Source: Saccostrea cucullata (Eukaryota). Taken from it: a stretch of 64,000 nucleotides of DNA. The stretch covers positions 62,001 to 126,000 of the forward strand of contig NW_026935527.1 of the NCBI RefSeq assembly GCF_032062105.1. The letters are read 5' to 3'. A program made the translations under genes and the position numbers. Positions within the stretch are counted from its first letter, which is position 1, and every line of letters starts with the position of its first letter. This document shows positions 13,461 to 61,244 of the stretch, piece after piece. The notes beneath the pieces were generated by a model. It had not been told where the DNA came from. It saw only the letters and a list, made by a program, of their open reading frames with translations, and did not search any database.

Positions 13461-13461
13461 A

Positions 13462-13604
13462 CATTGCCGTCGGTAGCGAATTGAAAGTGGATACCCCCCC
13501 CCCCCCCCCCCAGATAAGCCCCTATTTCAATGCCTATATTATTATGTCTTTGCAAAACATTGTGTGACTACCACACCCCCCACCCCCCGGTACAGATGCC
13601 TATG
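13462..13604. mobile_element. MITE of the same family as 6884-7033, adjacent to or inserted in the LINE relic
   Basis: cattgccgtcgg...aaagtgg...tttcaatgcctat...gatgcctatg aligns with 6884-7033. Confidence 0.65.
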
Positions 13605-13780
13605 CTACACCCAAATATATGTATTTGCATAACTGGTATGACGCTAAAAACTTTCAATAAATTCTAGTTTACGTAGAATGCACGCAAACTGGCAAAAATT
13701 AGGTACAGTAAAACACTTCAGAAAAAAAGAATTTTCAAAGTATGGAAAAATCAAAATCGCTCAATTTTACACCCTGAAGT

Positions 13781-14517: not shown

Positions 14518-14564
<47 letters not shown>

Positions 14565-14589
14565 GGGGTCCTGTCCACAAGTACCTGTG
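13781..14589. mobile_element. Non-autonomous DNA transposon with ~215-bp TIRs, 8-bp TSD (CCTGAAGT) and an internal hairpin; hAT- or P/Galileo-like
   Basis: cacaggtacttgtggacaggaccc...aagggagaaaggtatg (13781-13995) mirrored at 14352-14589; cctgaagt at 13773-13780 and 14590-14597; inner IR 14008-14160. Confidence 0.9.
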
Positions 14590-14684
14590 CCTGAAGTCAC
14601 CTCATCACCGAAGAGTTATCAAACATGGTTCAATTATTTATCATACCCAAGATTTACAAGAATATTGACAAAGCCATACACATT

Positions 14685-14741
14685 TTTTCAAAGTGCGTTA
14701 ATATGGTCGTCATTAACGCACTTTGAAAAGAAATTTTATTT

Positions 14742-14787
<46 letters not shown>

Positions 14788-14828
14788 AAAATTTCAAAGT
14801 GCCTAATTTTTCAAAGTGCGTTGTAACA
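14685..14828. repeat. Inverted arrays of tttcaaagtgcgtt subrepeats (DNA transposon end)
   Basis: Six alternating tttcaaagtgcgtt / aacgcactttgaaa units ending gttgtaaca. Confidence 0.6.
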
Positions 14829-15104
14829 ATGCATGCATGGGCCAAAACGCAGTGTACTAGTACTCTCTCAATAATAAATACATTATAGACTTCTTCTACC
14901 GCCCTTGTACTTATTTTCACATGTATGTTGCAGATAAAACATCATGATAAAGTGTAAATTTTTACAGAGATTCTGCCACATGCCATACGACTGACTTATG
15001 TTTAATATTTTCGTGACAAATGAGGAAGTGCGAATCTTTAAGTCTTTCAATGGTTTCTTCCATTCTGAGTGTAAGATCTCTTCTTTGTAGCTGTTTGTAC
15101 AATA

Positions 15105-22822: not shown

Positions 22823-25800
22823 TTACTCCCATGGCCACTTATTTTGATGATCACAGACAAATGTTATAGGGATATTACCAACCCCGAACAGTGGGCCTTT
22901 ATCTATGTGGACGCTAAATGCTGCGGCAACGGCGCTGGCGTACGTGGAGCTGAACATAAATGGAAACTCCGTGGTTACCTCGAAGGTTCCTGAGCACGGC
23001 TCGTAGTCCTTTCCATTAGTACCCGGGACAGGACAAGCAACGTGGCAAGATCGCCCACAAGTGTCGAAGGCTGTCAAAATAACTTTTGTTGGTTTTTCCT
23101 CAGTTGGTTTTTTAATGGCGATGTAACTGACGGATGAGTAAATGGGTTGTCTCTCATCAATGATAGCGTAATCCTTGTATCTCCCAGCATAGTTTAAACC
23201 GTCTGACTGAACATAAACCTTGGCAGCACCTGAGCCAGAGGAACTACATGTTTTCTTGTATTCAACTTGATTATGGATCCCGATTTCATCGGCAATTTGT
23301 CGGAAGTTTTCTATATCATACATATCCTTGGTACCGTTTTGCCCAGGAAAAGTGGCATGGAAGTTGAATCCCTTTGGTCGTTCAAAAAGAACTTTGATAT
23401 TTAACCATGCCCAGTTGGTCATATCCACTCGTCCATCTATGATAAATGTATTTTGATAAGCCTGGTCCAGCGTGGAGAGGGCTGTTTCACTAGACTGAAG
23501 AACGTTCAATGTTTTATTATCGACATTTTCATCGGTCAATGATTGTGGACGAGTTGTAGGCTCCGATGGACTCGAAGCTGTTGGAGGAAGTTTTGGGCCA
23601 TAAACTGTGCCTTGTTGTTGATCAACACTTCGCTTCTTCCTGGACATCCAAAAGAAGTTCGATCTTGTCCTTGGTGCGATGGATCTGGAAACACACACTT
23701 GATTCCTGCAAATCAGATAAGGACTTCCATCGCAATTGGGACATCTAGGCATCGGTCTATAGGTGACCATTCTATCGTAGGTGTCTGACAAAGCTTCTAA
23801 GTTTGAAATTGGGCGGAGGAAAGGTCTGAAATCTGCTCTTTGGAAGAATTCGTGACCATTTGGCACATCATGACCCATGGGGTAATCCCTCTGTGGATCT
23901 ACCCCCCTTGTTCTTTGAAGACCTTTAAAGGCTATCCATATAAGAGTAAAAAATGAATGGATGAAGTAGAAGAGAGGATCAAACCAAGCAGTATTGAGGC
24001 GAGCCATATGTCCATCTACCCAGTTGTGTACACCATTGTGATGAACCTCGACAGAAAAGACAGATAGTCCTCTGCTTGGCTCTGAAATTTCAGCTAGTCT
24101 CCTTCTGCTCAACATTGCACGGATTCCCTGTTTTCTGGCCAAAGATTCACCAGCTAAAATGAAACGATTAAATTCAAAATATGCAGAACTGTAATGAAAC
24201 CCAACATACTGAGGTATTAATGGAGAAATACTAGCAAATAAACGTTCACCGAACAAAAAAATTAGGAATCAGCACAATATTTATTCTTCAAAATGTCAAC
24301 ACATTTAGACGTTTCTTCTATTAAAGGTAAACTGATAACTTCCAGTACGTACCTGATCCGATATTTCGGATGATGGGCGTCCCGATAATTGTTCTCCATT
24401 GACCAAATGGACCGTCTCTGACGGCACCATTGCCGCTCCCAAAGAACAGAGGAGACCAAATGATTGAGTTTGTGGGATCGTTCATATCGGCATCCATTGT
24501 CATATCCCAGTAAGCCAAAGGGGTACGACAGGCTGTTTCCATACTGAAAAAAAAGTCCTAATTATTCCTTAAAAATGTACTTTATGGGGAGAGAAGTACT
24601 CAGTATTAGGATTCTTTTTAGGATTAGAAAAGAAAGTATATTTACATTAACATCATAAGAGCATGTCTTGGAAAGAAACCAGGACCACCGTGCATGTTTT
24701 CAGCTGCTCTTCCAGTGTGCAAAGAACCAATCAAATCGTAGGTACTCATACTTGAATCAATGGACTGAAAACAGAAAAAATAATTAATAGAGAGAAAGAA
24801 AGGGGATTTTTTTGCTGCTGAATTACTCATATGTGATAGGTGATGTTCTACACAAGTTCCGTGTCAATGTCGTTTTTATGAATGATTAATAAATTGTCAA
24901 AATGGGTTCTCCACAAGAAATGATTTGCAGTTATCAAAGGTCGTCTGACGAACGACTACGTATATCTGTCAACACCTGTGGTAGGGTGAAGTTGAAATTG
25001 AGAATGACAGCTAAATGATTTTTTAAGACAAACATTAAGTTTCTCATTTGACAATAATTCAGGCGTTAATGATTTTTATGCGATCAGCTATAAATACGAT
25101 GTATTCTAGGCACTTTCTGTCAAAGTGATCTTGACAATTAAAACTTGATTAAAGAATGACAATTAAAAACAAATTTAAGCTTCAAAAACATGATGTTACC
25201 TGGAAATTAAGAAATTGAAATGCGACCCATGTTTCTTTTCATGAACATATTCTAATGTGGGTAATTTGTGAAGTATAGCTGACACAAATGCAATTTTTTG
25301 CTGAATGCAGACGGACTTTTAAAAATTTAATTAAAGGTGCAATACATTTATAATGATGGAAAAATAGTCGTTAAAAATCTTTCAATATCAAAACAAAGTA
25401 AAAAAGGAAGTTAATGGTTATCTAGAAAATACATTTAGAACCAATTCTCATCCTGCTCTTGTTTACTAATTACTAAGTTTTGAACCCTACTCGCTTTGAA
25501 CAATGGTTGGAAGGGTTAAAACATTAAACTAGTTTATCTTCATTTGACTGAAATAAAATAAACTGCTTTTTAAATAAATCACTTTTCACCTCTCATTGTC
25601 CAGCTTCAAAGTCTGGTTCAACGTGTTCTTTTTTAAAAACATACAAGGTATTCTAAATTATCTTATTCAGCCAGGTCTTATTGGATCAGTATGTGTCTCT
25701 TTACATTTTGAATGTAAGAATATTTCCTTTTTTAAAAAAACTTACATAATCATTCTTTAATCTGGTAAAACAGCTGGTGAGTCTCAGTAACTGCGCTCTT

Positions 25801-26174
25801 GATAATGTCCTGACTTCCTGCCGAATTCTCCATGTTTGGATAACCTGTCTTTTGCTCCTCGGTTTCTCATGGTTCTTTTTAATCTCGTGAATTTCTCCAT
25901 CGAGTTGTCTGAAAAGGGATTCCAGGTACCTAACGCCATCTTTTGTGATGTTATGTGTGAACCTAGGTTCATCCATATTTAAGGCTAGTTTGGTAAAGCA
26001 GTAGTTTTGGATGAACTGGCCTGGTGTATCTGACATACTGACATTAATGGACTTGTACATGAAACACTCTTGTAATGCCTTGGGTGTTGGGATCGGTGTC
26101 ATCAACCCTGGAACGGTTGGCAGGGCAACGAGTGCCAAAACCATACAAAGCATGGCCGCTCTTCCTCGATTCAT
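22823..26174 (-). CDS. tyr: Secreted tyrosinase-like protein (type-3 copper), 689 aa; coding exons 26174-25746, 24764-24646, 24543-24353, 24153-22823
   Basis: Signal peptide MNRGRAAMLCMVLALVALP; RSKR furin site; RQEVRTLS; CuA LHTG...MHGGPGFFPRH; AYWD; FFGSGNGAVRDGPF; CuB HHNGVHNWVDGHM...AWFDPLFYFIH; RKKR then the Cys-containing C-terminal domain typical of bivalve tyrosinases, ending WPWE. All GT-AG with phases 0,2,1. Confidence 0.95.
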
Positions 26175-26909
26175 CTGTGGTTGGGAAGGGAAAAGAAAAT
26201 GTTTTATTACGTACATTAATTATATTATCTAATATTACTAAAATGCATCCTTATTCTATATTTGAGAATGATTACTTTATACTAAACAGAACCACGAATG
26301 AAAAAGTACAGATCATTGCAAAATACATTTATTCTATTGGGAAAGGGAAATTCTTTTTGATTAAAGAAACCCAAATAGCTAAAGTTGTTAATATCCTGTT
26401 ACGTCCGTCAAGGAAAAACCACATAGCAGATTTTGTGTCTAACTCGTTTTAAAAATGATTACATAAGCTAAAAAAGATTTGTGTAAAATATAAATGTTGC
26501 TTTCTATATAACTAACGTGCGTTTTAGCTTTACGTTTAATGTTTTTTTTTAATCAAATTAACTTCACTTATTTATCTTTTAATTAATAAATAAGAATTGT
26601 TTGGATAAAACATTATTTTTATTGAATTATTCTTGGCCTCAACAGCAGACAAGGCTAACATTTGGAAAATGATGAAAAATAAACTAAAAAAAAAATAGGC
26701 AAAAAGATCAATTCCAGCCAGACTTGTCTGAGACAATATCTTTATATCCTGTATATTTCCTCATGAAAGGGTCCATTCATTTTAAGCAAGAAAAAAGACA
26801 CTAAATGAAATCCAAAATTCAATCTTAAAGTATTCTATTCAAGATTAGCATCCATGTGTCTCATCTCCAGCGAAAAGATGAAAATTTAAGGTAAGAACCT
26901 AGAGCCTAC

Positions 26910-44073: not shown

Positions 44074-45101
44074 TTAATAAGAACAGTGGCATGGTTTTCC
44101 CTGCGAAATAGAAAATTTCCAATCAGTTACTCAATGTTCACATTAATGTTTTAAATTTAGTTGTCAGTGCAATTGTAAATATATTCCCTGACACTTACCA
44201 GTGGTCTCTCGCAAACGTAATGATTAGCCTGGCCACAGCTGTCAACATGCCAATGGAATTTGTATGATCTCCAGAAAACACCACAGTTGTAGTCGCCATG
44301 TTCATGATAAACTGGTTCCTGGCCGTACCAGTCAAATTTGTGGCATGGCTTGACGGTGAATCCCCAGCACCATCTATGTTTATTTGGTCTCAGAACGTCA
44401 TTCAAAGCCAGCCATGCACCTCTTCTGTCTGAATGGCAAATGTATATATAGTTTTAACAAGTACTCACTGTACTCGTTAAGATTTTACACTGTTTTTTTA
44501 TTGTATGAAAGATGTGAGGGTAACAAACTAGTATTCTAGCTCAAATATGTATGTGTTATGTATATTTATGACTTACATCCATAAATGCTGCACATATGTC
44601 TTACGTATGTGTTTTCATGGGACTGGTCAATGGACACCAGGTATCCTCCCATAGCGACACATCTCATCTGTAACAAAGTAAATAAAACCATTGGTTAAAG
44701 AAAGACCCATTACAATATGCATGATATGAAATAAAACAAAGTTTTTTAAATACACTTATCCTAGATAAAGGGTTCGTACAAAAAAACAATTGCCACAAGT
44801 AAGGCAAATTATGCTTACAGAAGCTCTGTACCAGTTGAGTTTGTCTCTGCTGAACCAGTAACACCGTTTATTGTACTGATGCCATCCGTATGGGCATCCA
44901 CCAGAAACAACTTTGGCGGCAGCATACTTAAAGGCCCTGTACTTGGGAGCATTGCCGTAACTGGCCTCAGATACTTTAGGAAATAAAAATATGTGGCAAA
45001 TCATATTATTCTTTTTATAATTTTTGTAAATACTTGTAGTGGAAATACATACCAGCTAGGAATGTGGAAACCAGCAAAAGCAAAGCGACAAGTGTGTTCA
45101 T
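44074..45101 (-). CDS. Secreted C-type lectin-domain protein A1 (perlucin-like), 183 aa; exons 45101-45053, 44973-44819, 44667-44577, 44428-44199, 44100-44074
   Basis: MNTLVALLLLVSTFLA signal; CPYGWHQYNKRCYWFS...WYRASMRCVAMGGYLVSIDQSHEN...WLALND...EPV...NCGVF...WHVDSC...YVCE...GKPCHCSY*. All GT-AG, frame intact. Confidence 0.93.
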
Positions 45102-45482
45102 GATTGAAACTTTTCTCAATGTCCTAACTCACACTTTCATCGTGTATATATACCAAATGCAAAAGAAATCAATTCCTCATCATACATGCATATGAACAGT
45201 TGTTAAACACAATAAGAAGAAACGCCTCTTTCCATTTGCTTCATGATGAACATGAGTTTCCATGCTAGATTTCCAGAGAGTCATCGTATGCCTATAACAT
45301 ATAATCGGCTTAAGATGCAAAACAGATGTCTACATTGTTTTAAACATAAGTAATGTAAGAAATACCAAAAAATACGACAAGTAAAGGGCGTTCCAAATAT
45401 GCTTTTGGAATTTGCTGAGCACTCGAAAGAACATATATATAAGAGGGATTGTTGGCTTCGTCTCGAGTACTCTTAAGTCACC
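45102..45482. promoter_or_regulatory. 381-bp divergent (bidirectional) promoter region with two TATA boxes
   Basis: tatatata at ~45146-45153 (about 45 bp from the A1 ATG) and tatatataag at ~45435-45443 (about 40 bp from the B1 ATG). Confidence 0.65.
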
Positions 45483-46613
45483 ATGAACGCCTTCCTTGCT
45501 CTCTGTCTTCTGTTCAGCGTTATTGCCGGTGAATCATTTATCAAAATTCTTTCTTTCGATAGTTGAAAATTTTTATAAGTTTTAAGATTGCTTAAGCTTT
45601 GTTTTAATTCCTTTACAGTTGAAGGCAGTTATGACTATGCTCCCAAATACAGCAGTTTTGGATATGTTGCCGCCAAAGTCGCTAAAGGGAGTTGTCCTTA
45701 TGGCTGGACTTTGTATCACGGGACCTGTTATTATTTCAGCAGAGACAGACTGTCATGGTGGCAGGCTTCTGTAATTTAAGCTTTTGAACAGATGATATAC
45801 TGGGGTATAGCGTGAAAATAAGAGAATCCGTGTTTGATTAGAATTCTTGCTTTATTTTCCCTTAAACTGTTTCAGATGAAATGTGCCTCTATGGGAGGAT
45901 TTTTATGTAATGTTGACGAGGCTCACGAAAACACATACATCAGACATCATCTTGCTATGTACGGAGGTACGTTAACAATGGTACACTAAAACGGTGTTAA
46001 AAAATAAATGTGTGCAACGAAAATAGAAGTACTCAATTTGAAATACATATATGACAATATTTCTTATTTTCAAAAGAATATAGATGTAAAATATATCCAG
46101 TTACGCTATCTTAACAAATTGCCTAGCTAAAAAGTTTTTTAAAAAATTAAAGCTCTGAAGAAATTAACATATTTTTTCTATGCATCCGATGGAATATTCT
46201 TATCAAGAGCATGGCAAGAGAATCACATAATTTTATGTTTACAAAATAATTATAGTAAAGCCTGGAGCCTGGATGGCCCTGAACGACTGCCTCTACCCCA
46301 ACGCCCACAGATGGAACTGGGGATTCACCAAGAGGCAATGCCACAAGTTTGACTGGTACGGTAACGAACCTGTGTACCACAAAAAAGGAGACTGGAATTG
46401 TGGAGCTTTCTGGTCTAGCTACAAATATCATTGGCATGTCGATAGCTGTGCTCAGAGAAACTACTATGTCTGTGAAATGAAATTGGTAAAAAATTTTATT
46501 ATTTGTTGCATTAGGTGATGTCTAATTGTACTTGCATGATACATTCAAAGTTTATCATTTATTCATATATTATTTCTTTTATACAGGGAAAACCATGCAG
46601 ATGCCAGTATTAA
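45483..46613 (+). CDS. Secreted C-type lectin-domain protein B1 (perlucin-like), 181 aa; exons 45483-45528, 45619-45770, 45876-45966, 46256-46485, 46587-46613
   Basis: MNAFLALCLLFSVIA signal; CPYGWTLYHGTCYYFS...WWQASMKCASMGGFLCNVDEAHEN...WMALND...EPV...NCGAF...WHVDSC...YVCE...GKPCRCQY*; AATAAA at 46631. Confidence 0.93.
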
Positions 46614-47989
46614 TTCAATGTGAATTTCTTAATAAAAACTTCCTCAAGAAATATATCCAATTGTTAATAATGTTGTGTTATCTATCTGAATCTTTTGACA
46701 AAGAGCCATAAATATGTAAATGAGAAATTCAATAAATTTAGAAAAAAAATCAATGAAATTGACTAATAAAATTGGGTCTAGGAATTAGATATGAACGTAG
46801 AACGTCTTAGGACAAGACAGTTTTTAAAATTGCACTAGTTCAGTATTAAATATCCCTATGAAAGACAAGAAATTAATAACTAATTTATGTAATTTGACGC
46901 ATTAAAATACCCAGGGATTCATTTAAAAATCCCAAACCTCATTCAACATTCGATATTTGAAATACGCGATCGGAAATTCAAAAGTCAAGATTCTATACAT
47001 CAACTATATAAGTTACTATTTAGAAGGCATTTCACAATTACCCTTTGCTAACTCTTGAGAGTCAAGAAATCACATTTGAAAAATCAATATTGCAAGAAAG
47101 AATGTCAAAAAATAGCAAAATTATATAAAACAGATTGTTTGATTAGTTTAGCAAATTGTCATTAAACATTCTATACTGCCTAAAAACGAAAAAATTGATT
47201 TATAATAAGAATATTAGACTCTTATATTGACGAATGAGCATTGTTGGATGTCATAAATCAATGCACACAAAAAAATGTTAACATTTTTTTCACTGGATAA
47301 TAAATATTTGTCGATTTTTATTTTAGATAATTCTTTACAAAAATTAGATTTATCAATTTTCTTTGAATACACCTGATAGGTATTTTAAAAATGCGCTAGA
47401 ATATTATTTAAATTAATAGCCTTCATACGCAATGACATCAGAATATATTGGAAGTTACAAACGAAAGCGAATTTCATGCCAAGAAACGTACATTTAGAAT
47501 GATGCATCCATTTTTGGTGTGGTTTTTTAAAATTTAAATACATTTCCTATTAATTTCTTGGTTCTTAGAGTAGATAATTAATGTTTTTCAAATTTAAATT
47601 GAAAGTTTTTTTATTTAAATAACTATGTTCTTTAAGTACGTTCTATTTCATTCTGAGTCCAGGTGTGTCTACGTTTCTTGGATAATCATGCAAATGATAT
47701 TTACGGTAATACACCTGATCATTTAATTATAAAAATTCGAAAAAGCTTTTTAAAATACAAACTATTTAAAAAGAAAACATCATTCTTATCCATTGAATCA
47801 GTTATTTTGCCAAATTGAATAATAAACGTTTAAAAATAAATTCATTTTTAAGAATCATCATAGATGCCAGATTTTCCTTGTGTCAAAATATCATACGATT
47901 TGGTTTCTATGATATTTAACTTAAATCTAACATGCTCCTGAGAGAGACTAGTAATGAAAAATATGGAGATTACAATTAGAATTCAAGCT

Positions 47990-48490
47990 CAGGGATCAGA
48001 GATCGAATCAGATGCAATGGAGATGTGAGCATCCCTTTGCCGACCGTTAACTTGTCATGATCGGGAAATAGTAGAATATTTCATCATTTGAATGTAAAAC
48101 GTCAGTCAGCATTGGACTTAAAGATAGATTGTACTTGCTTATAAGGTCATTCTATCGACCAAAGAACTTGCGAATAGATGACTTATCGAGACTGTTGATA
48201 TTCTTGTTTCATCAACTTGTCTGTCAATAACTTACCTCGTTTTAGAAATTGTTCGTGCGTACAGCATGCTCTTAAACCAACTGAGAGATATGAACTACAA
48301 ATGCAGGTGAAAGTGGTATATTGCTATATATTGGATGAAGGATTTGTATTGCGATATACTGTGATGATTTTAGTTGTATGGCAATATGTATTACAATATT
48401 TTCAACGAAAATTTAAATGGTATGCTTTATTATCTTAATTTCTCGTTACATGCAGATTGTACACAACTCTGATAAATGACCAAGAAAAAA
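47990..48490 (-). mobile_element. Degenerate Penelope-like fragment joined to a hAT-MITE-derived segment
   Basis: atcagatgcaatggagatgtgagcatccc (reverse 3' module), reverse RT tail, then gtattgcgatata...caatattttcaacgaaa matching 57488-57552. Confidence 0.55.
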
Positions 48491-49357
48491 TGTTTCTTGA
48501 TATCATTACACTTATACAACAAAGATCCCCTACAACAGTTTTTACCTTCCTGTTTGGCAAAATCGTGAATGTTTCCGACGTCTTAAACTTTATACTTTAA
48601 ATCAAAAGTCATAAGTCCAAGTACTAGTAATTTCTCTCATATGGGTACTAAAAACGTATTGAAATACATTTTCTCATCATTCTGCAATACATAATACTTG
48701 CTTTTTTAAAGCTTGGAAAGCATTAAAAATTTAGGAAATAGCTGTTTTACCACAAAATTCAATGCAAAAAGTAATATGAAGATTTGTTCTCTTTAATTAT
48801 CATATCCTGTGGACAGTGGTTAAAAAAAGTTTAAGGTTCATTAACCCTCTGCTCACTCATATAAAATGTTGTTTGAACCTTAATGATTTTTCAAGAGAAA
48901 TGCAAACAATTGTACCATAGCTTGGGGGCAAAATTAGACAAAAAAGGAACTTCCACCTGGCAAATCAATAAAGAAATAATAGACATTTTGGTCATAAAGA
49001 GTTTTCTCTCTTATCAGGGTATCAATGAACCTTAAATGGTTAAGTTATTATAAAATAAAGGGAACGTTATGTGCATTTAGTCAGGAGAAAAAAGTAAAAG
49101 GATATTTTTGTGATCATGTCGACCTGGGACCTGAAATTACATAATTTTCCTAATGGTTTCATTATTTAAAGTGACATTTCCAGATAAAGTTTAAAATGAA
49201 CATCTGGCAGGAGGAGAGAGAGATTTTACATGAAGGAAGAAATGCAATTGATAGGACACAAATAAATGTACCAGTTATCCTGAATTTCACGTAAGTATTA
49301 AATAATGATTGTCTTAACAATTTCACATGTATAAGCTCAAGGGTTTATAATAATGAA

Positions 49358-49519
49358 NNNNNNNNNNNNNNNNNNNNNNNNNNNNNNNNNNNNNNNNNNN
49401 NNNNNNNNNNNNNNNNNNNNNNNNNNNNNNNNNNNNNNNNNNNNNNNNNNNNNNNNNNNNNNNNNNNNNNNNNNNNNNNNNNNNNNNNNNNNNNNNNNNN
49501 NNNNNNNNNNNNNNNNNNN
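49358..49519. other. Assembly gap (162 N)
   Basis: Run of N that truncates the last exon of lectin B2. Confidence 1.
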
Positions 49520-51676
49520 GGCATCTACAAGGTTTTTCCCTGAAATACAAATTTAAAATATAAATATATACACTCATACAACAAAAACCACTATCAAATT
49601 CAGAGTAGTCAAAATACCAGGTATATATATGAATATTCGAAAAATAAAATTACATCACCGCAACTTTACAGAAAGTCCCCAGAAAATCAAATAATGACGT
49701 TTATTATATAAAAAAAAGGAAATTACCAATTTCATTTCACAGACATAGTAGTTTCTCTGAGCACAGCTATCGACATGCCAGTAGTATTTGTAATGCTGCC
49801 AGAAAACTCCACAGTTCCAGTCCCCCTCTGTATGATATACGGGCTCGTTACCGTGCCTCGTTAGGGTAAAGGCAGTCGTTCAGGGCCATCCAGGCTCAAG
49901 GTGTTACTATTATTAAATAGAAATTGTATATCCTCGAGTATGCGAATTATAACATGGCATAGTTCACCTACATATTAGACGGAATGAAAACAACTAGAAA
50001 CCATTTCCCAGTTGCAGGAAAAAGATGAAAAAAAATTTATACATTTTGTATCACAAAAAGGGTGAAGATAAACAATAATATATATATATACTCTATTGAT
50101 TCATAAACAGAGATAAGATCAGGGGGTCGTAACATAAAGGCTACTTAAGTTTAAGACAGTGCTTAAGTACGACTTAAGCACAGTATAAAACTTAAGACGT
50201 AACTAGAAGCGTACTAAGATTTGGCAATCTTAGCAAAACTTAGGCAGCCGTTAAAGGTGACTTAAGTATAACTTAACTTTCGTATGCATATATTTAGAAC
50301 TATTCTATGTTAACTTTTGGTGTTAAAGCATTCCTCTATTCATATTATGCTTTAAAGAATATAATAATTCCTAGTAAATACTATTATTAGAATTTTTTGG
50401 TTCGGAGGTTGGGGTGGTTACTGATCAATTATTCCACTATTACTGTAACGATTTTACAAAGAACAAATGATTATCTATTGGGTCCGCTTAGGATTCCTTC
50501 CTAAGAATCACGTTTATAATAGAAATAAAACAAACTTCAATAACAATGGCGAACAACTGACTGAATTCACTATATATATTTTTCCTAGGTCCTATCTGGA
50601 TAATGATTAGAAAACTAACTATAAAACAAACTATAACAACAGAATCACTAACAATCAAGCAAATAATCAAATATAAAACCTATCCCTGTAGTTGCAGACT
50701 GAGTGGTATAACCAACAATTATGTTGTTTCCCGACACAGTCTGCAACTACCTAAAAAGCACCCCCTAAAAGTCACTGAGACACCTTTATTAAAAGTCACC
50801 AAGACACTATATAAAATAAGTCACCAAGACACTATAGTCACTGAGACACATACAAGGAACTAGATTCTTAAGCTGAGTGGTCTAACGAATAATTCTGTTG
50901 TTTCCCGACACAGCCCAAGAACCTAGCCCAGGAGGTGTTACTCAAACGATGAGTAACGACCAAGTAACCAAATACTTCACGGGTGTTTGTATTTATACTC
51001 TTTCTACTTCCAAATGATTGGATAATAATTTGCAAACTCTGATGGCTATAATGTAAACGTTGATTGGTTATTATCAAATTATTCTATTGGACGATTTCAA
51101 AGGCATTTCAATCCACTATGATTATTCTATTTCATTACATTACTCTCAAGACACCGTCAAGTCATGTAAATGCAAAATTTAATTTTAGAGATACGTCTGA
51201 AATTAGTGGGACCTAAATCGGTTATAAACAATCCACTAATCACTATAAGTAAATTGAACACAGTTATAGTCTTAATCATGGATCTGCATGTTGACTTTAA
51301 AAATATGAGATGAAATAGATTTTTAAACACAGAAAAAATATTTGGGAGTAAGAGGATGAGGAGCAAAAACTAATAAAGAGTACTAGTGTCTGTAAATAAA
51401 AATATGTAGAACGACAAGCGCGATCTTTGCAGTCTTTGCTTGCTGACATGTACTGATACATCGGGGGGGGGTCTAAATGGTGAAAATGTTTTGTACTTTT
51501 TGTAGAGTTTTAATTTCAAGTAGACAGACGTTCGGTTCGCTGATATTAGATAAGACGCCGAGGTGAGAAGACGTGCTTAAATTTGGCTCCTGATTTTACC
51601 TGAGCTACCTGTGCAATTACTCTGATTGGATTACAAAATAAGTCCTGTTTTCAATAATCACTATGTAGTAAATCAA

Positions 51677-53159
51677 ATGATGGATGTGAGTTCAAGTTCC
51701 AGTCTTTTTAGATCATTTCTGGATTCTTTTACTGGATTCACAAATCCAATAAATGACAATCATGATGACGTGCATATTAATGTGGACATACCAAGCTTTC
51801 TAAAAGTCACCACCAATAAGAGGAGCTTTACTGTGAACTTTGACCAAGAAAAATATGAAATTATTTTTTCATATTTGCAACAGGAATTGTTATGTGAGAA
51901 AACTACTAAGGGAGATGGCCATATTTTTTAAGACTAGTTGTAGATCTGTTACAGCTACAATTTACAGAAGTACCTCGGTACTCCATATTCAGGGGAGTAC
52001 AGCATCATCATGGTGCGAGAAATTCATTGAGGAAATAAGTGTTTACGCATGTGACACGAATGAAACAAATATCATTATTTCCCAACCGCCGCCACAAATG
52101 GCATCTACGCCAAGGAGGAACCTATCGAATTATGCTCCGTGTAATGAAACTCAAGAATGCAGCAGGTGCTGTAATTCTGCCTTACGCGTGGAGGAACTTT
52201 CATCAATTGTTCAACGCTTAACGCAGGAAATCGAGTCGTTAAAAAAGGAACTGAGTGAAAATGCAAATAAACGTGTAACCAGTTCAAGTACTCAGACAAC
52301 CTGTACAGTCCTCAAACATAAAGGCAATTGTACAAATGATCTGCCAAAGGCTTCTAACAATGTCACTTCTAGACATGTACAGTGTAATGAAGTTATACCA
52401 GAAGTATCTATGAAAGAAGGCTCTACAAACACAGAACCACAACAACCTGTGCACCGGAAACTAGGAAACAGTTCCGTCCAGAAACAACGTAATTCCACAT
52501 CTAGCAACCAGCAGAAAACTACACTCCTGATCGGAAGTTCAATTCTGCAACGTATTAAAACCCGTGGGTTATGTTCAAATGTTAGTGTGAGTACCAACAG
52601 AGGAGCCAGCATTTCTTATATTCGTAAGAAATTGCAGCAATACGATGTGTCTTCTCTAGAAAATGTCATAATTCAGGCTGGAGGAAATGATGCCTCAAAT
52701 AAACGGAATATGGAAGCAGTAGAAAATGACTTTTCCGAGATAATAATGGATCTGAAGAAGAGGAATTCAAATATTAATGTTTTCATTTGTGAAGTCATGC
52801 CTCGAAAAGATGCATTGATCATTGATGTGAATGAAGCTATCCGTTTTGTGTGCGAAGAGTATGGTGCGACAGTGATTAAATCAAGTCAAATTTTCAAAGC
52901 CTGGAATTCCCCTTTATACTGGAAGGACGGTATACATTTATCTGACCAAGGAACCGCCTCTCTGTTGAAACTATACAATAAGCATGTCCCAGTTCTGAAG
53001 CAACATCAAGTACCGGCTCCCTCCGCATCGATAAAATATACGTGCTGCTACTTCTGTGGAGAACAAGGCCATTCATCCAGGAATTGTAGACATGGGAGCA
53101 AAGTAGACTGTTGGCAGTGTGGGGAACCTGGCCACAAACAAAAGTTCTGTCCGTACTAG
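51677..53159 (+). CDS. LINE ORF1p: coiled coil + SGNH/GDSL esterase + two C-terminal CCHC zinc knuckles; one +1 frameshift at ~51924-51931
   Basis: VEELSSIVQRLTQEIESLKKEL; LLIGSSI / RGA / AGGND / DGIHL esterase blocks; CYFCGEQGHSSRNC and CWQCGEPGHKQKFC. Confidence 0.85.
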
Positions 53160-53467
53160 AATAGGGGCAACGAATGTCTGGCCGAATATACAGAGAGTAT
53201 TTCATTAAGTCTGCAAAATAACTTTTTACCTCTCGAAACTTTATGTTCAGAATGCAACAAAAATTCATGTAAATGTATCTTAAAAAATTCTCAAATAGAA
53301 TTTTTAGCTGCCAAAAATATACATTATCTCAAAACTAAGCAAAAATCTAATTCTAAACAGGAGATAAACAAAAGCCTAGCCCTGAAAGTCTAAATTCTAC
53401 CAAAGCAATAAACATCTCTAATAAATGTGCCCCGACAAATTCTGGTTTTGGTCTAGTTAAAAAAGGT

Positions 53468-56293
53468 TTGCGTTTCGGAAATTTTAACGTGTGTCATCTT
53501 TTACCCAAATTAGACGAAATGAAATTAATTTTACAAAATGAACGATCTATGGATGTGTTGGGGCTTTGTGAATCTTTTTTAAATGAACAAATTAGTGACG
53601 CAGATTTGAATATAGATGGTTATGTACTTGAAAGAAAAGATCGACAAAATAAGGGAGGTGGTGGAATAGTTATTTATGTCTCAAATAATCTATCCTATAA
53701 GCGTCGACAAGATTTAGAAATTAGTAACATAGAAACAATATGGTTAGAAATCAATTTAAAAAACACAAAGCCTATCCTCTATTGTTCTGCATATCGCCCA
53801 CCATCTGCACCCACCTGCTGGGTGGAGGACCTAGCTAGGGAGATAAATCGTGCCTCCTGCTGTGATGACCAAGAAATCATACTTACAGGTGACTTTAATA
53901 TTGATCTACTAAAAGACCCCCCTCTATCCTGGACATCTGCACTAGAAGAATTTGGACTAACTCAATTAATTACCACACCTACTAGAATTACTAACACCTC
54001 ATCTACCCTTATTGATCATTTCTACACTACCCAACCTGACCTCATCTGTGAAATCCAAGTACCACCCATAGCTATGTCTGACCATTACCCTGTTTGTGCA
54101 ACACGCAGATCTAACAGCATGCAGCGTAAGGGAAAACACACTGAAATTCAATACCGCGACTTTAAGAATTTTAATGAAGAAAAATTTCTTTCCGATTTAA
54201 AAAGTGTCAATTTTGATGCCCTTACGAATTTGGACAATCCTAACGATATCTTAGCGAACTTTTACAATATGTTTAATACTATTCTAAATAGTCACGCTAA
54301 AGTAAAGACTAAACGTGTGAAAACTGAGTCTCGTCCAAAATGGTTAACACAAGAAATTAATGATGCTAGACAATTACGAGATTACTATCATCAACACAAA
54401 GACTTTGAAAATTTTCGACATTGGAGGAATAAAGTTACGCTTTTGATTAATAATGCTAAATGTACTTATTATAAATCAGCTATTGAGGAGAGCTCTAATC
54501 CTAAAGAACTCTGGAGCTATCTGAACCATTTATCCTCAAAGCCAAAATATTTTTTTCCTACTCATATTAAGGACAACGGATCAGAAATTAACGATACACA
54601 AGGTATTGTCAATGTTTTTAATGAACACTTTACAAAAATTTCTAGCAATTTATTAAATGAATTACCAAAGCGTAACTTTAAACCAGAAAAGTTGAAAGAA
54701 TTCACAAAGTCAAAACTTAATGATGAAAATGTATTTAGCTTACTTCCTATAAGACAAGACGAGGTCTTCTCAATGCTATGCAAACTTGACATTAATAAAT
54801 CGGCAGGTATAGATTTCATTGGTCCCCGCCTCTTAAGACTCTCTGCTGATATAATTTCTAAGCCTATAACTCATCTAATTAACACTAGCATTACTAATGG
54901 CATCTTTCCTTTGCATCTGAAACAAGCTAAAGTCACCCCTATATATAAAAAGGGCGATAAAAATGATCCAAGTAATTACAGACCAATATCAATCTTACCG
55001 ACTTTATCAAAAATTTTTGAAAAACATGTTGCTAATCAAGTACGTGAATTCACCAGAGCTTTTGACCTCATTACAAACTCACAGAGTGGCTTTAGGGAAT
55101 TCCACTCTTGCCAAACGGCACTTACCAAACTTACTGACAGCTGGTTGCATGCAATGGATCAAGGGAATCTCACTGGCATAGCATTTCTAGATTTCAGTAA
55201 AGCATTTGATTTAGTCAGTCATGATCTCTTAATTGAGAAATTGAGGCACTATAACTTTGATTCACTTACAATTAAATGGTTTCAGTCTTATTTAAATGAA
55301 AGAACCCAAAGTGTTAAAATTGGTGCATGTTCTTCTGATATCTTACCTATCACAGCAGGGGTGCCCCAGGGATCTATTTTAGGTCCACTGCTATTTTTAT
55401 TGTACATAAATGACCTCCCCCTATGTGTCAATCACTGTAATATTGATATGTTTGCAGATGATGCAACTCTGCATTTATCTGATAACAATGTACATAATAT
55501 TGAAACATTTTTGAATTATGATTTATGCGAAATTGAAAACTGGTGTTTACAGAACCAAATGATTCTGAACACGAACAAATCAAAATCTATGCTTATGTGT
55601 ACACAACAAAAAAGGTCAAAATTAGATATTCCAGAACTTAATACAGAAATTTCTGGAGAAAAGCTTGAAAATGTTAATGTTGAAAAACTTTTAGGTGTCT
55701 ATATAGATCAAAATCTTCATTATAATTATCATGTAGATTCAGTTTGTAAATCCTTAACATACAAGTTATTTACACTCCGTAAAATTAAGAAATTTCTTCC
55801 ATTAAATACCAGAAAACTTTTTTATAATGCATATATTTTGCCTTCAATAAACTATTGTCTTACAATATGGGGCAATGCATCTAAAACTAGCATTGAAAGA
55901 ATTCATAAACTTCAGAAACGGGCTGCTAGAATTATTCTTGATGCAGCACCCGACGAACAATCAAAACCTTTGTTTGAAAAACTGGGATGGCTAAATGTAT
56001 TTGAATTAGTCACTCTACATAAGTGTAATTTATTGTACAAAACTTTTTATGGTATGAGCCCCGAATATCTCCAGGACCTTTTTGTTTTTCATAGCAATGA
56101 TTCCTATTCCTTACGTTCAGAATTAAATTATAATCTTCGTTTACCAAAACATAGAACAATTTTATTTACAAATTCTATTCAATATTCAGGTGTAAATTTA
56201 TGGAATAACCTACCATTACATATAAAATTATCACCAACCTTACCTATTTTTAGACGAAATGTAGAAAAAATTATAATTAGCCAACGTATGTAA
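53468..56293 (+). CDS. LINE ORF2p: apurinic-like endonuclease + reverse transcriptase, uninterrupted ~941 aa
   Basis: NV, LCES, YRPP, GDFN, LIDH, SDH (APE); NYRPIS, QSGFR, DFSKAFD, GVPQGSILGPLLF, FADD, KLLGV (RT). Confidence 0.95.
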   Translation: MRFGNFNVCHLLPKLDEMKLILQNERSMDVLGLCESFLNEQISDADLNIDGYVLERKDRQNKGGGGIVIYVSNNLSYKRRQDLEISNIETIWLEINLKNTKPILYCSAYRPPSAPTCWVEDLAREINRASCCDDQEIILTGDFNIDLLKDPPLSWTSALEEFGLTQLITTPTRITNTSSTLIDHFYTTQPDLICEIQVPPIAMSDHYPVCATRRSNSMQRKGKHTEIQYRDFKNFNEEKFLSDLKSVNFDALTNLDNPNDILANFYNMFNTILNSHAKVKTKRVKTESRPKWLTQEINDARQLRDYYHQHKDFENFRHWRNKVTLLINNAKCTYYKSAIEESSNPKELWSYLNHLSSKPKYFFPTHIKDNGSEINDTQGIVNVFNEHFTKISSNLLNELPKRNFKPEKLKEFTKSKLNDENVFSLLPIRQDEVFSMLCKLDINKSAGIDFIGPRLLRLSADIISKPITHLINTSITNGIFPLHLKQAKVTPIYKKGDKNDPSNYRPISILPTLSKIFEKHVANQVREFTRAFDLITNSQSGFREFHSCQTALTKLTDSWLHAMDQGNLTGIAFLDFSKAFDLVSHDLLIEKLRHYNFDSLTIKWFQSYLNERTQSVKIGACSSDILPITAGVPQGSILGPLLFLLYINDLPLCVNHCNIDMFADDATLHLSDNNVHNIETFLNYDLCEIENWCLQNQMILNTNKSKSMLMCTQQKRSKLDIPELNTEISGEKLENVNVEKLLGVYIDQNLHYNYHVDSVCKSLTYKLFTLRKIKKFLPLNTRKLFYNAYILPSINYCLTIWGNASKTSIERIHKLQKRAARIILDAAPDEQSKPLFEKLGWLNVFELVTLHKCNLLYKTFYGMSPEYLQDLFVFHSNDSYSLRSELNYNLRLPKHRTILFTNSIQYSGVNLWNNLPLHIKLSPTLPIFRRNVEKIIISQRM

Positions 56294-56553
56294 ATAAATG
56301 TTTGAATATGTCCTTTGTACAAAATGTTTGACTATTACTATTGTTTAAGACAATGTCTCTTGAACAATTAATATTGACTTCTTTATTAATTTTGAATCTA
56401 TATCTCATTTAGATGTACATTACATTATGCACTAACGAACTCTACATGTTTTATCTTTGATTGTATCATTTTATGTAATATGTTGTTTGAAATTAGAAGG
56501 CCCCGGGGAAGAATAGTACCTGGTACTAATCGGGTTACCTTCTCTAAATAAAG

Positions 56554-56586
<33 letters not shown>

Positions 56587-57055
56587 CTTGTCATGTCTAC
56601 GAGAGTAACAAAGCAAGTGAACATTTGTCAATACAAAAGAACAATAAACGATAACTGAAAACATCGCAGCTTCGAGGGATAAACAAAAGTCCAACATTTA
56701 CAATGAACCACAAGTCACCGCTTTGTGACCATAACAAAATTAAATCTTTGATACGAAATCTCATCTTACAGAACTAAAACGATAGGTAACGACATTAACT
56801 TTAATACATATTTGATTAATACGTAATCGAATCATTTTCTAGCAATATATCTGAATAAAATGAAAAAAATATAGGGTAATTCAAAGGAAATATCTCTAAC
56901 ATAAGTTTGACTTAGCTAGGACCTAGCTAAGTTCGTTTTATGTTACGGTTTAAGACATACTTAAGTAGTACTAAGACAGGTCCTAAGATTGTGCCTAAAA
57001 CGTACTTATGACCCTACTTAAGTCAAAAACTTAACAAGCTTTATGTTACGAGACC

Positions 57056-57460
57056 CAGGTGCTCAGGAGATGGTAGCATCCCTCTGACGACCGGGCACAC
57101 CCATCGTGGGTCCCGTGTACTCATTGGGTAGACGGAACGTTTTATATAGTCAAAATTCAGTAGTAAAATATAGGCCTTAGAATTGGTATGAAAAACGTCA
57201 ACCAAAATACAATCAAATAGCCAGAATACAACCAAATGATAGGTTATTTTGTTCAAACAAGGTCCTTATTACAACCAAAGAATTTATGAAATGTTGACTT
57301 TTAAAGAGGTTGTTGAAATCCTTGTATCATCGACTTATTTTGAGTAATTTCCTTCGGTTAAATGATCATACTCGTAGCAAACTCTTGAGTATCAAATTAG
57401 TTGAGAGGTGTAAACACCATATGCAGGTGATAGCGGCATATTACTACATAACTAAGGAAA
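57056..57460 (-). mobile_element. Penelope-like remnant (reverse), host of the Harbinger and hAT insertions
   Basis: gtgctcaggagatggtagcatccc...accgggcacacc is the reverse 3' module; reverse RT tail continues to 57460 and resumes at 58438. Confidence 0.6.
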
Positions 57461-58429
57461 TAGGGCTGGGTATTGACCAGAGATTTCGTATTGCGATATA
57501 TCGCGATATTTTAACTGTATTGCGATATGTATTGCAATATTTTCAACGAAACTAATAATGGCATATTCTTATTATATTACCTTTAATTTAGATGCAGAAA
57601 GTTCATAACTATGATCAGTAACCAAAAAAAAATAATCTTTAGTTATGCTCTGAAAGAAGAAGGTATGGTTTTAGCTTTCTTGCGCCCTAAAAATGTAATG
57701 ACATCAAAAAGTTTTGAAACTGGCTTAAATATTAGATAAATATATGACTGTGATAAATCTGGAAAGAATATAGCATGAAGGTTTACCATTCTGCAATTAT
57801 GACGTCATTAATGTGAAGCATTTCTCTATTTTCAACAGAAAAAGCCTCAAAATGGCCCATTTCAAGGGTGATTTTCCTTTAGAAAACAGTGTTCACAGCC
57901 GTCGCCCACACTTATTTTTTGATATTTTGTGCAAAATTCAATAACAAATCACATATCTCAAAATCTGTGTGGGCAATGCCTGTGGACAATGTTTTCTGAA
58001 AGGAAATTCCATTGAAAATTGATGTCTTCAGCAACTTTTTAAGAAAATACGGGAAAATGCACATGTTTATGACGTCATAATTAGCATTTAAAAACATATG
58101 TGAGAAAAATTATTTGTATGATTTTTTCTGCTTTGAATTTTAATTATTTAAAAAGCATGAGTTTTCAACTTTTACACCAGTTTCATTTTTTAGAAAATCA
58201 CAGGGCAAAATTTGTATGGAAACCATACCTTGCTCTTCACCCACAAGACAGCTTCTTTTGTACTTTTTGGCTTCATAACAAATCTTTCTTACATTGATTT
58301 TTATATTTAATGATAAAATTCCCTAGTCTAAGTTTTTGGCCGGTATATCGATATTACAAAAACGTATTGCGATATTTTTTGTCATTGTATTGCAATATAC
58401 CGAAATATCGATATTATTGCCCAGCCCTA
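57461..58429. mobile_element. hAT-type MITE with 8-bp TSD (TAAGGAAA), containing a further nested TIR element (~57661-58230)
   Basis: tagggctggg ... cccagcccta; taaggaaa at 57453-57460 and 58430-58437; inner aggtatggttt ... aaaccatacct. Confidence 0.85.
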
Positions 58430-59118
58430 TAAGGAAAGTTGACGATGAAAATGTTAAAATCATCTTGTTTGACCAACAACAGAATTCTTAGAACACGGAC
58501 CCCTCAAAATTTCTTGAGTAGGATCAGTTGACTAGTAGTAGTGAACATGCTTTCTTGGATGGTTACTGACACCGTGAACCCTATGTATTGATCAAGTAGA
58601 CGGAACATTCAATAGTCAAATGTAAAAAGAAATCATCTCCTAAAATAATTATTATAGAGATATTTCCTTGACCTACCTCCATACATTTCGAGGTCCGATG
58701 TATGTATTTTCATGGGCCTCGTCAACATTACATAAAAATCCTCCTATAGAAGCACATTTAATCTAAAATGTCAAATCAAATTCCGTGACTCGCAATCTGG
58801 TTTTAGTGAACAAAACAAATCTTACTTATTTATTATTCAAATTGTGAATTTCATTAAATAAATAACCACAGTTATAAGCATGAAAAATTATATTGAAAAA
58901 AATCTTTCTGAGATAAAAGGAAAAGGGGGCTTTTTTTTATTTCCAAAGCTTGATATTGCTAAAATAATCAAACTAATATTTACGGACGCCTGCCACCATG
59001 ATAGTCTGTCTCTGCTGAAATAATAACAGGTCCCGTGATACAAACTCCAGCCATAAGAACAAGACCTTTTAGCAACTTTGGCGGCAACATATCCAAAACT
59101 GCTGTATTTGGGAGCTTA

Positions 59119-59579
59119 GTATACAGTTATCCACTGGTTGTGAGTGGGATAGATCTTTTATCAAACCCGCGACAGGGAACTATTCCCCGCGGGCTTGCCC
59201 GAGGGAAATAGTTCCTGTCAAGGGTTTGATAAAATAGCTATCCCACTCACAACCAGTGGATAAGCGTTTTATCATACTGATGTATGATATAATTTTTGAA
59301 TGATGAATATGTTTGGAGTAAGATAATACTGCAAGAATAATCTGAAATCCTGATGACGTCACAATGCTACTGAAGTCATTATGACATCAACATTCTATAG
59401 ATTTATTGCTGGAAATCAAAATTGGCGGCAAAAAATGCATGAAAATTTTCCGAGGGGTGGTTAGCAAAAACTATATCCCGGGGTATAGCTTTCCTATGCA
59501 TGGAAATTTTCAGACTATAAAAGATAGTTATTTTACCTTCTGAACTTTATATAGGAAACATTTTAACCGAAGTATAATA
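59119..59579. mobile_element. ~460-bp element with a long subterminal hairpin (Crypton-like), inserted in lectin B2 exon 2
   Basis: ttatccactggttgtgagtgggatag...ctatcccactcacaaccagtggataa hairpin (59128-59263); the flanks rejoin to B-type exon 2. Confidence 0.75.
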
Positions 59580-60050
59580 TTCATAGCTAGCTTTCACTGT
59601 AATTAAGATATAATAGAATTATTTGAATAGATTAAAAGAAAAAAGTTTCTTTCAATTTGCTTTGTCTTTTAAGATATTACAAAGTGCGAAGATAAGTAGA
59701 CAATTCATGACTGTAGCTTTTAGCATATTGCTAACGTTACATATTCTGTTCTTTTTACCGAGTTTCGTATCGTTTTCTTACATATGTGAAATGTAAATAT
59801 TCACGCCCTTTTCGTGTCAAAACATGCAGGAAAACTGTATTGTACTGATCGAAGGGAAAGAATAGAAGAACAGTATATGTATTGAATCGCAAATGGATAT
59901 GGGAGATATCGGGGCGGGAATTGAGTCCGTGTAAATGTGATATTATACCAAGACATAAAATGCATTGACCCTAATCAAATATGGTTGAATAGAAGTATAT
60001 ATATCGAGGACAATTTAAGAAACAAGTAGGTTTCCAAAATAGGCTTCAGC

Positions 60051-61244
60051 ATGAATACAGTGATTTTTGCTTGCCTTTTGCTCTCTGCAACACTTGCTAG
60101 TAAGTAAAACAATTAACAAACTGCGATATACATGATATAGTCATTCCTTATTGAGTATGTTTTACTCAGTTAATACAAGGGTGGGAAGAGAATAGAAAAT
60201 GTCTTCATCTTATGCTATTAATCTTGTAACAAAATATTTCAAAGTTATAAGTTAGCTAAAACAACAAAAAATATTCCATTAATGGGCGCAAATTTCATAA
60301 ATCCCCTGGTATATCAAATAAAAATGCTTTATCTATGTTTTTTTAATTTTTTCTTGTAGTCTCACAAGCTAGCTATAACATAAGACCAAGGTACAGTGCC
60401 TTTAAGTATGCTGCTGCCAAAGTTATTTCTGGTGGCTGCCCTTATGGATGGCATCAGTACAATAAACGTTGTTATTGGTTCAGGAGAGACAAACTGAACT
60501 GATACAGAGCTTCTGTAAGTAAAAAAAAAATATTTCAATATTTTTTTAAACAAAAAACCCCATTCTAAGAAAACCTGAATAAGCAGTGATTACAAACTAC
60601 TTAGTATTTAAAACGGTACTTTTTTTTTAAATTATACACAGTCTAACACGACTCAAACTATTCAGAGAATTTACGTATAATCGATATAGATGAGATGTGT
60701 CGCCATGGGAGGTTACCTGGTGTCCATTGACCAGTCCCACGAAAACACCTACGTAAGACATATGTGCAGCATTTACGGATGTAAGTCGTTGCTATCTATT
60801 AAGATTTGTTATCAAATATCAGCTCTCAATGAATCATAAATACAACTGATTGAAACTATGAAAACATGTGCAATTCAGATAGAAGAGGAGCATGGTTGGC
60901 TTTAAATGACGTTCTGAGACCAAACAAACATAGATGGTGCTGGGGATTTACGGTCAAGCCATGCCACAAATTTGACTGGTACGGTCAGGAACCAGTTTAT
61001 CATGAACATGGCGACTACAACTGCGGTGTATTCTGGAGATCATACAAATACCACTGGCATGTTGACAGCTGTGGTCAGGCTAACAACTATGTCTGCGAGA
61101 GACCACTGGTATGTCTCTTTAAGATACTGAGATTTATCTTTACCTAAAAGAAAATCAATACATGAATTTGAACATTTTTGAATCGTATTAACTGATTGGA
61201 AATTTTCTATTTTGCAGGGAAAACCATGCCGCTGTTCTTATTAG
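60051..61244 (+). pseudogene. C-type lectin A2 (paralog of A1) with a single in-frame TGA at 60500-60502; exons 60051-60099, 60360-60514, 60690-60780, 60879-61108, 61218-61244
   Basis: Same exon sizes as A1 (49/155/91/230/27), intact splice sites, and KLN*YRAS where A1 has KLNWYRAS. Could be a null allele or a sequencing error. Confidence 0.85.

Follow-up and report, generated by a model that had tools for sequence, protein, structure and literature searches.

Head-to-head paralogous subunit genes with a short bidirectional promoter are exemplified by collagen IV genes of the COL4A1/COL4A2 type, in which the unit has been duplicated whole and the heteromer is proven. A comparable layout occurs in the hooded oyster, Saccostrea cucullata, within a stretch of 64,000 nucleotides that was analysed as a whole (hereafter the window; NCBI RefSeq assembly GCF_032062105.1, contig NW_026935527.1, positions 62,001 to 126,000 of the forward strand). 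Here two genes whose products carry a C-type lectin-like domain (CTLD), A1 and B1, diverge from a short spacer, and a second, damaged pair, B2 and A2, follows in mirror-image order. Collagen IV is a protein family unrelated to the oyster A and B proteins, whose own heteromer is putative. The explanation that we hold with moderate confidence, working from sequence, is that A1 and B1 form a working, divergently transcribed pair of paralogs, each encoding a small secreted protein whose C-type-lectin fold is non-canonical ('perlucin-like'), that a shared promoter would keep the unit together, that its products would belong to a settlement secretion, and that pair 2 is probably being lost in S. cucullata, B2 having gone first.

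Divergent CTLD pairs with a putative shared promoter have been described among the clec genes of C. elegans (bioRxiv 10.1101/2024.09.05.611528), where a single function needs both members, and heterodimerisation has been proposed, not shown. These genes encode transmembrane pathogen-sensing receptors, are of independent origin and are not orthologous to oyster A and B. At the protein level, the account of SPL-1 and SPL-2, lectins of the clam Saxidomus purpuratus, given in PMC12842671 (after Unno et al. 2019) reports A and B CTLD chains joined by interchain disulfides, with Ca2+-independent binding and, as in oyster A and B, non-canonical motifs. As far as that second-hand account goes, they differ in their N-terminal interchain cysteines, in also forming a B:B homodimer and in having no reported gene-pair architecture, and they come from a distant heterodont clam. 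The snaclecs of snake venom resemble A and B in having two paralogous CTLD chains, lost sugar binding and extra cysteines, but they are distant in sequence, and oyster A has an even cysteine count in most species.

Two further systems bear on function. In C. gigas, a cluster of five consecutively numbered perlucin-like CTLD genes, CGI_10006917-10006922, was reported by Foulon et al. (2019, PMC6337334) to be pediveliger-specific and to encode proteins 44-48% identical to the C-terminal CTLD of apfp-1, a foot protein of Atrina; three proteins of this cluster peak at settlement (Trigg et al. 2020, PMC7574277). Like A and B these are secreted single-CTLD proteins, but the papers present them as a candidate list, without A/B subtypes, pairing or shared spacers. 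The cluster is probably orthologous to the A/B array: A and B of Magallana gigas carry the NCBI/UniProt names found in the C. gigas cluster, lie in one genomic cluster and are 75-84% identical to A1/B1. The other system is apfp-1 itself, from Atrina pectinata (PMC4912638), a foot-secreted protein of a structural or adhesive interface with a layout like that of an S. cucullata relative, P0008. It is described as mannose-binding, whereas A and B have neither the canonical motifs nor an N-terminal domain of the 3,4-dihydroxyphenylalanine (DOPA) type. An initial sequence-only reading of the window had known of no such unit in bivalves. No published account of the paired gene architecture was found, and to that extent the statement stands, but the clam SPL-1 A/B heterodimer and the probable C. 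gigas orthologue cluster were already in print. The array is conserved in oysters and was already partly known from expression studies.

The intact pair and its oyster relatives

Gene models of the first pair were built from the sequence, with both strands read. Its features, in window coordinates, are as follows.

44074-45101, minus strand: A1, intact A-type CTLD gene, 5 exons, 183 aa
45102-45482, no strand: pair-1 spacer, divergent promoter region, exactly 381 bp from ATG to ATG
45483-46613, plus strand: B1, intact B-type CTLD gene, 5 exons, 181 aa

The A1 exons lie at 45053-45101, 44819-44973, 44577-44667, 44199-44428 and 44074-44100, and those of B1 at 45483-45528, 45619-45770, 45876-45966, 46256-46485 and 46587-46613. 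Their sizes run in parallel (49/46, 155/152, 91/91, 230/230 and 27/27 nt for A1/B1), and the introns, with splice sites checked by script, are all GT-AG with phases 1,0,1,0 in each gene. TATA-like runs stand in the spacer at 45145-45152 (minus strand) and 45434-45442 (plus strand), each about 50 nt 5' of its ATG. The two proteins are 63% identical and share one layout: a signal peptide, a single CTLD and an 8-residue GKPCxCxY tail encoded by the separate 27-nt exon. What had first been noticed here, distinct CTLD paralogs with identical intron phases, 381 bp apart and with two TATA boxes, is thus reproduced in full by the gene models. The A1 model is 100% identical to NCBI XP_062581327.1 (P0081). 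No entry identical to B1 was returned by queries with single exons or database proteins, the joined B1 model not being among the queries; joined spliced models were used in local scripts only, and all searches were made by exon or with database proteins.

Against Pfam Lectin_C, A1 (P0081) scores 42.7 bits where the cut-off is 22.6; single exons alone fall below it, and PF00059 is found in all full-length relatives. The six cysteines of the long-form CTLD (A1 residues 43, 54, 71, 147, 163 and 171) are invariant in 29 of 29 aligned A and B sequences, their disulfide partners (C0-C0', C1-C4 and C2-C3) being assumed from the family pattern. The classical Ca2+/sugar motifs EPN/QPD and WND are absent: EPV and W-H-V(-D) stand at these positions, which were placed by eye against the CTLD consensus with mannose-binding protein A as the guide. 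Among solved domains, those of the mannose-receptor family and DC-SIGN are closest in sequence; far behind them, snaclec chains match only the N-terminal half of A1 (E ~1e-6).

A search of the whole assembly (1.17 Gb) with the A1 exon-4 peptide and with P0081 revealed five A/B pairs on the contig (C17664), in the order A1<- ->B1, B2<- ->A2, B3<- ->A3, A4<- ->B4 and A5<- ->B5. The array spans 42 kb; pairs 1 and 2 are its first two units, and pairs 3-5 lie just past the window and are intact. From pair 1 to pair 5 the ATG-to-ATG spacers measure 381, 341, 334, 311 and 309 bp. They are not mutually alignable between pairs, the identity of pair 1 with pair 2 (44%) being at the level of unrelated spacers. 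No intronless copy of the family was found in the S. cucullata genome.

Synteny had been proposed as a check, and linked head-to-head orthologues were indeed found in four further oyster species, adding three genera: alternating A/B genes occur in S. echinata, Ostrea edulis, Magallana gigas and Crassostrea virginica, with units in both orientations. All five units on the S. cucullata contig and all those sampled in the other four species are head to head, and no orphan A or B was found among about 16 sampled units in four genera. The spacers of the five S. cucullata pairs (309-381 bp) and of the two S. echinata pairs measured (343-382 bp) fall within the limit of <1 kb used for divergent pairs. 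In one O. edulis unit the spacer runs to several kb, and Pinctada has two undifferentiated copies about 9 kb apart. Orthologous spacers of S. cucullata and S. echinata are 81% (pair 1) and 79% (pair 2) identical, and A1 intron-rich regions about 74%. In M. gigas (L041, 2702-5530), the annotated ranges of A and B in one pair overlap by about 270 bp at their 5' ends, and divergent transcripts may overlap in this species.

The family is narrow, with 25 matches at E<=1e-3 among 1.84 billion representatives. Its named relatives are all oyster 'perlucin-like' proteins, plus one Pinctada protein; this NCBI name (perlucin is an abalone nacre protein) is transferred by similarity only. In a maximum-likelihood tree of 38 proteins, in which P0009 stood in for the partial model of C1, an unpaired relative, and B2 was left out as too broken, the A clade includes all five species with support of 99/98, and B together with the unpaired C2 type is its sister group. 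Judged by this phylogeny, A and B are distinct, old paralog clades; the separation of A from B, like the head-to-head unit, is older than the divergence among the four sampled oyster genera.

Purifying selection on these genes is strong, the ratio (omega) of non-synonymous (dN) to synonymous (dS) divergence being 0.03-0.08 between orthologues and paralogs. In S. echinata, B1 (L040, 1247-2786) and B3 (15728-16955) encode identical mature proteins and differ at 26 sites, all of them synonymous (dS 0.37), a likeness that by these counts is due to unusually strong purifying selection, not recent gene conversion. More generally, gene conversion alone was rejected as the source of paralog similarity, because synonymous differences between paralogs are many (dS 0.14-0.37) and replacements almost absent.

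The second pair and the order of its decay

The second pair, as first described, consists of B2(<-) and A2(->) in mirror-image order across a 341-bp spacer. Both members are disabled in S. cucullata, and the S. echinata orthologue of the pair is intact. Its features are listed in the order of the forward strand.

49358-49519, no strand: assembly gap (N), beginning 21 nt into the last, 27-nt coding exon of B2
49520-59709, minus strand: B2, multiply broken pseudogene
49520-49540, minus strand: B2 exon 5 remnant, with one extra base against B1 and S. echinata B2; ends at the gap
49727-49906, minus strand: B2 exon 4 remnant, 180 nt against 230, with an in-frame TGA at 49896-49898 and a 50-nt deletion
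49907-58676, minus strand: B2 intron 3, about 8.8 kb against 227 bp in S. echinata, enlarged by inserted repeats
51840-56293, plus strand: long interspersed nuclear element (LINE) inside B2 intron 3, apparently intact, both open reading frames (ORFs) open
58677-58762, minus strand: B2 exon 3 remnant, 86 nt against 91, with a frameshift from a 5-nt deletion
58984-59120, minus strand: B2 exon 2 remnant, without acceptor site and first 15 nt
59121-59579, no strand: dispersed repeat of about 460 bp, opening with a 137-bp near-perfect hairpin at 59127-59263
59683-59709, minus strand: B2 exon 1 remnant, ATG at 59709 and the first 9 signal-peptide codons
59710-60050, no strand: pair-2 spacer, 341 bp, with the A-side TATA kept and the B-side TATA-like motif altered against S. 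echinata
60051-61244, plus strand: A2, A-type gene, 5 exons, intact apart from one TGA

With multiple lesions and an intact orthologue at the matching position in its close relative S. echinata, B2 is a unitary (lineage-specific) pseudogene. About 140 bp of it, from the end of exon 1 through intron 1 to the fifteenth nucleotide of exon 2, have been swapped for 562 bp, of which at least 459 bp are the dispersed repeat, the rest being unassigned sequence that runs to 59682. This repeat, which is present in hundreds of copies, with 937 first-look candidates genome-wide and about 90% identity among the scored copies, destroyed the 5' end of B2 and is probably a non-autonomous transposable element. 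The LINE comprises ORF1 (51840-53159, 439 aa), with a GDSL esterase domain and a zinc knuckle, and ORF2 (53468-56293, 941 aa), with endonuclease and reverse transcriptase domains. Elsewhere in the window, at 12546-16770, ORFs with reverse-transcriptase-like sequence on both strands are probably other retroelement remains.

The flanks of the assembly gap are collinear with S. echinata: 49214-49345 aligns to L040 8226-8358 and 49520-49857 to L040 8416-8734, in matching order and strand. The scaffold can therefore be trusted at this join, and the mirror-image arrangement of the two pairs is no assembly artefact. The reading frame across the gap is irrelevant, because B2 is already broken upstream of it.

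A2 is in a very different state. Its exons lie on the plus strand at 60051-60099, 60360-60514, 60690-60780, 60879-61108 and 61218-61244, and it keeps its start codon, every splice site, a TATA box and a poly(A) signal. The single lesion is a TGA at 60500-60502 in exon 2; a recoding site was considered for it and rejected, because the position is a conserved Trp in all paralogs.

The S. echinata locus is syntenic, with A1o(-), B1o(+), B2o(-) and A2o(+), and its B2 and A2 are fully intact across a 343-bp spacer. The mirror-image pair thus predates the Saccostrea split (dS ~0.45) and broke only on the S. cucullata side. Divergence of the S. cucullata genes from their S. echinata orthologues is given gene by gene.

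A2: dN 0.025, dS 0.47, omega 0.054
A3: dN 0.036, dS 0.42, omega 0.084
B1, all codons: dN 0.019, dS 0.44, omega 0.043
B1, alignable codons: dN 0.017, dS 0.40, omega 0.042
B2, alignable codons: dN 0.067, dS 0.54, omega 0.124

The dN of B2 is about 4 times that of B1, and B2 carries at least five independent disabling lesions. Changes in A2, polarised with outgroups, number 4 non-synonymous (the stop included) and 9 synonymous on the S. cucullata branch, and 4 and 12 on that of S. echinata. Had A2 been neutral for as long as B2, about 19 extra replacements and some indels would be expected, and none is seen. The lesions and raised dN of B2, together with an A2 free of excess change, indicate that B2 has long been dead and that A2 was constrained until very recently, or else that its stop is an allele or an error.

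Two claims of the sequence-only reading do not survive these figures. The pair was said to be decaying together; B2 has at least five lesions and a dN of 0.067 against 0.017 for B1, and A2 has one stop and an omega of 0.054. A2 was also said to have lost constraint once B2 had died; its branch shows no excess of replacements, and its omega is that of intact genes. The sequence of events would instead be that B2 died first, through the 5' repeat insertion, deletions and a stop codon, and that the single stop in A2 is only very recent.

It is possible, if not probable, that A2 is not dead at all, its TGA being an assembly error or a polymorphic allele in an oyster of high heterozygosity; B2 would then be the only pseudogene and there would be no co-decay, a view compatible with the other readings discussed here. 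The splice sites, start codon, TATA box and poly(A) signal that are all present, the omega of 0.054 and the lack of excess replacements on the branch are what a living gene would show. However, the NCBI annotation of A2 (XP_062581330.1, P0077) likewise avoids the stop, giving a product of just 115 aa from a downstream start at the exon-3 Met, and the assembly holds no second haplotype copy of A2 for comparison.

Pair 2 had further been taken for an inverted duplicate of pair 1, which can be traced only in part. Both of its genes are nearest to pair 1 over most of their length: B2 exons match B1 at 93% and 82%, against 77-80% for B3-B5, and A2 aligns with A1 continuously over 950 bp of exons, introns and 3' untranslated region. 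In exon 2, however, A2 matches A3 at 90%, and the spacer of pair 2 is nearer to that of pair 3 (55%) than to that of pair 1 (44%). The history of pair 2 is mosaic, and duplication of the unit with inversion is plausible, if not cleanly demonstrable.

Promoter sharing and the heteromer question

A shared promoter region of 0.3-0.4 kb, with a TATA element on each side, is the likeliest reason for the persistence of the unit, and would have A and B made together, in one set of cells and at one time. Orthology with C. gigas suggests larval settlement as the probable time, in which case A and B would form part of the foot secretion, the cement or the shell-adhesive interface. The GKPCxCxY tail and the odd cysteine of B would probably serve covalent cross-linking into a larger assembly, as opposed to an A:B dimer of strict 1:1 make-up. 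In M. gigas, spliced mRNAs of both A and B are present in each of two public libraries (SRR20648589 and SRR20648585). Logan contigs from these (L050 and L051) carry spliced M. gigas A and B cDNAs fused head to head on opposite strands, with an identical non-canonical junction in both libraries; they lack B exon 1 and most of the spacer, and may represent either two abundant mRNAs joined in a chimera or some unknown kind of processed copy.

Several points weigh against this account. Promoter sharing is read from geometry and conservation only. The spacers of different pairs cannot be aligned, and among the five no common motif emerged beyond the TATA runs, hence no common regulatory element is indicated. 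The orthology of the C. gigas CGI cluster rests on a name match (K1REI9, 'Asialoglycoprotein receptor 2', in the B cluster) and on clustering; the CGI identifiers do not occur in the supplements of PMC7574277, and no mention of K1REI9 was found in the papers searched. Finally, pairing is no rule in the wider family, since C2 and C3, sister to B, exist without an A partner. They belong to four relatives, C1-C4, on another S. cucullata contig (C3700, 22001-62000), which have matching exon structure and phases, extra N-terminal regions and no A partner.

In the sequence-only reading, conservation of the unit had a physical cause: A and B would be the two subunits of one secreted complex, an obligate heteromer whose stoichiometry the unit keeps and whose genes are born and lost as pairs. 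On the sequences compared here this appears rather unlikely. Strict A/B alternation in all units sampled from the five species is what it would predict, but a shared promoter accounts for the same conservation without any binding, and C2, in the sister clade of B, works without an A neighbour. Precedents for cooperation between CTLD chains are the clam SPL-1 A/B heterodimer (PMC12842671) and the paired clec genes of C. elegans, both of which are required (bioRxiv 2024.09.05.611528).

The cysteines speak on both sides. Nine are common to all A and B; residue 119 of A and residues 79 and 110 of B are clade-specific and fully conserved within their clade, and the B count is 11, hence odd, in all species. 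Counts are odd in both chains of some Saccostrea copies, and to that extent the earlier argument from snaclec-like extra cysteines holds. However, the eleventh A cysteine (residue 94) occurs only in Saccostrea A1 and A2 and in S. cucullata A3, and A has 10 in Ostrea, Crassostrea and Magallana. One unpaired cysteine per chain, the snaclec-type pattern, is therefore not what the family has, and from the even A count of those three genera one would not predict a snaclec-type 1:1 disulfide between chains.

Pair 2 has been used in the same argument. Both of its members are disabled in the sole lineage where the pair is broken, as joint loss would have it, but A2 stayed constrained long after B2 had died. 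This does not count against the heteromer but carries no information on it, since a partner could come from any of the four other intact B genes nearby, so that pair 2 decides the heterodimer question neither way. It does imply, since A2 was long constrained without a neighbouring B, that A can function without cis-pairing, at least for as long as other pairs persist.

It is very unlikely that the architecture is merely passive, the product of one ancient inverted duplication and later segmental copying of 3-8 kb, with no regulatory or physical meaning and with ordinary immune lectins as its genes: bivalve CTLD families have greatly expanded by tandem duplication (review PMC12842671), no alignable motif links the spacers of different pairs and units are present in both orientations, but about 16 units in four genera include no orphan A or B despite the old A/B split, the canonical sugar/Ca2+ motifs are missing, spacer length keeps to 0.3-0.4 kb in the five S. 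cucullata and the two measured S. echinata pairs, and the stage specificity of expression published for C. gigas speaks for settlement as against immunity (PMC6337334, PMC7574277).

Unpaired relatives, neighbours and larval adhesion

The unpaired relatives vary in architecture. A GKPCxCQ[YL] tail exon is present in C1-C3, whereas a look for one in C4 found none. The tandem copies C2 and C3 are nearly identical to each other and equal to P0002, with a Cys-rich N-terminal part followed by a Gly-rich stretch, and C4 has a long Lys/Ser/Thr-rich extension of exon 2. A lone A-like exon-4 fragment on a further contig (C14391, 42758-42953) is about 81% identical and has a frame break; no partner was detected within its 3-kb locus. 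P0008 (XP_062581476.1; C17696, near 587776-587991) is a protein of 502 aa in which a long Tyr/Lys/Arg-rich N-terminal region precedes the CTLD and a GKPCKCRY tail. The minus strand of the window carries at 22823-26216, about 18 kb upstream of the array, a tyrosinase-domain gene with a 477-aa exon ORF (Pfam Tyrosinase, E 4.5e-10) and an upstream exon that resembles a signal peptide; tyrosinases are also among the published C. gigas settlement-stage candidates. The tyrosinase gene and the 502-aa relative fit an adhesive or structural context, as circumstantial evidence.

A bolder form of the heteromer proposal would make A and B together an obligate, disulfide-cross-linked building block of larval cement or the shell-adhesive interface, and the unit a stoichiometry device that is born, inverted and lost whole. 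On the sequences compared here this is improbable; if it were true, the A/B unit would stand beside the collagen IV gene pairs as their invertebrate counterpart, in a biomimetically interesting material.

Under the account that we favour, a divergent pair kept by its shared promoter and probably serving settlement, the benefit would be practical as well. The cement of oyster larvae is difficult to extract, and transcriptomes are still the source of most inferences about the proteins in it. The conserved two-gene unit would give adhesion biology a short protein list and a 0.3-kb promoter to work from, and may provide markers of settlement for hatcheries and a compact, stage-specific bidirectional promoter.

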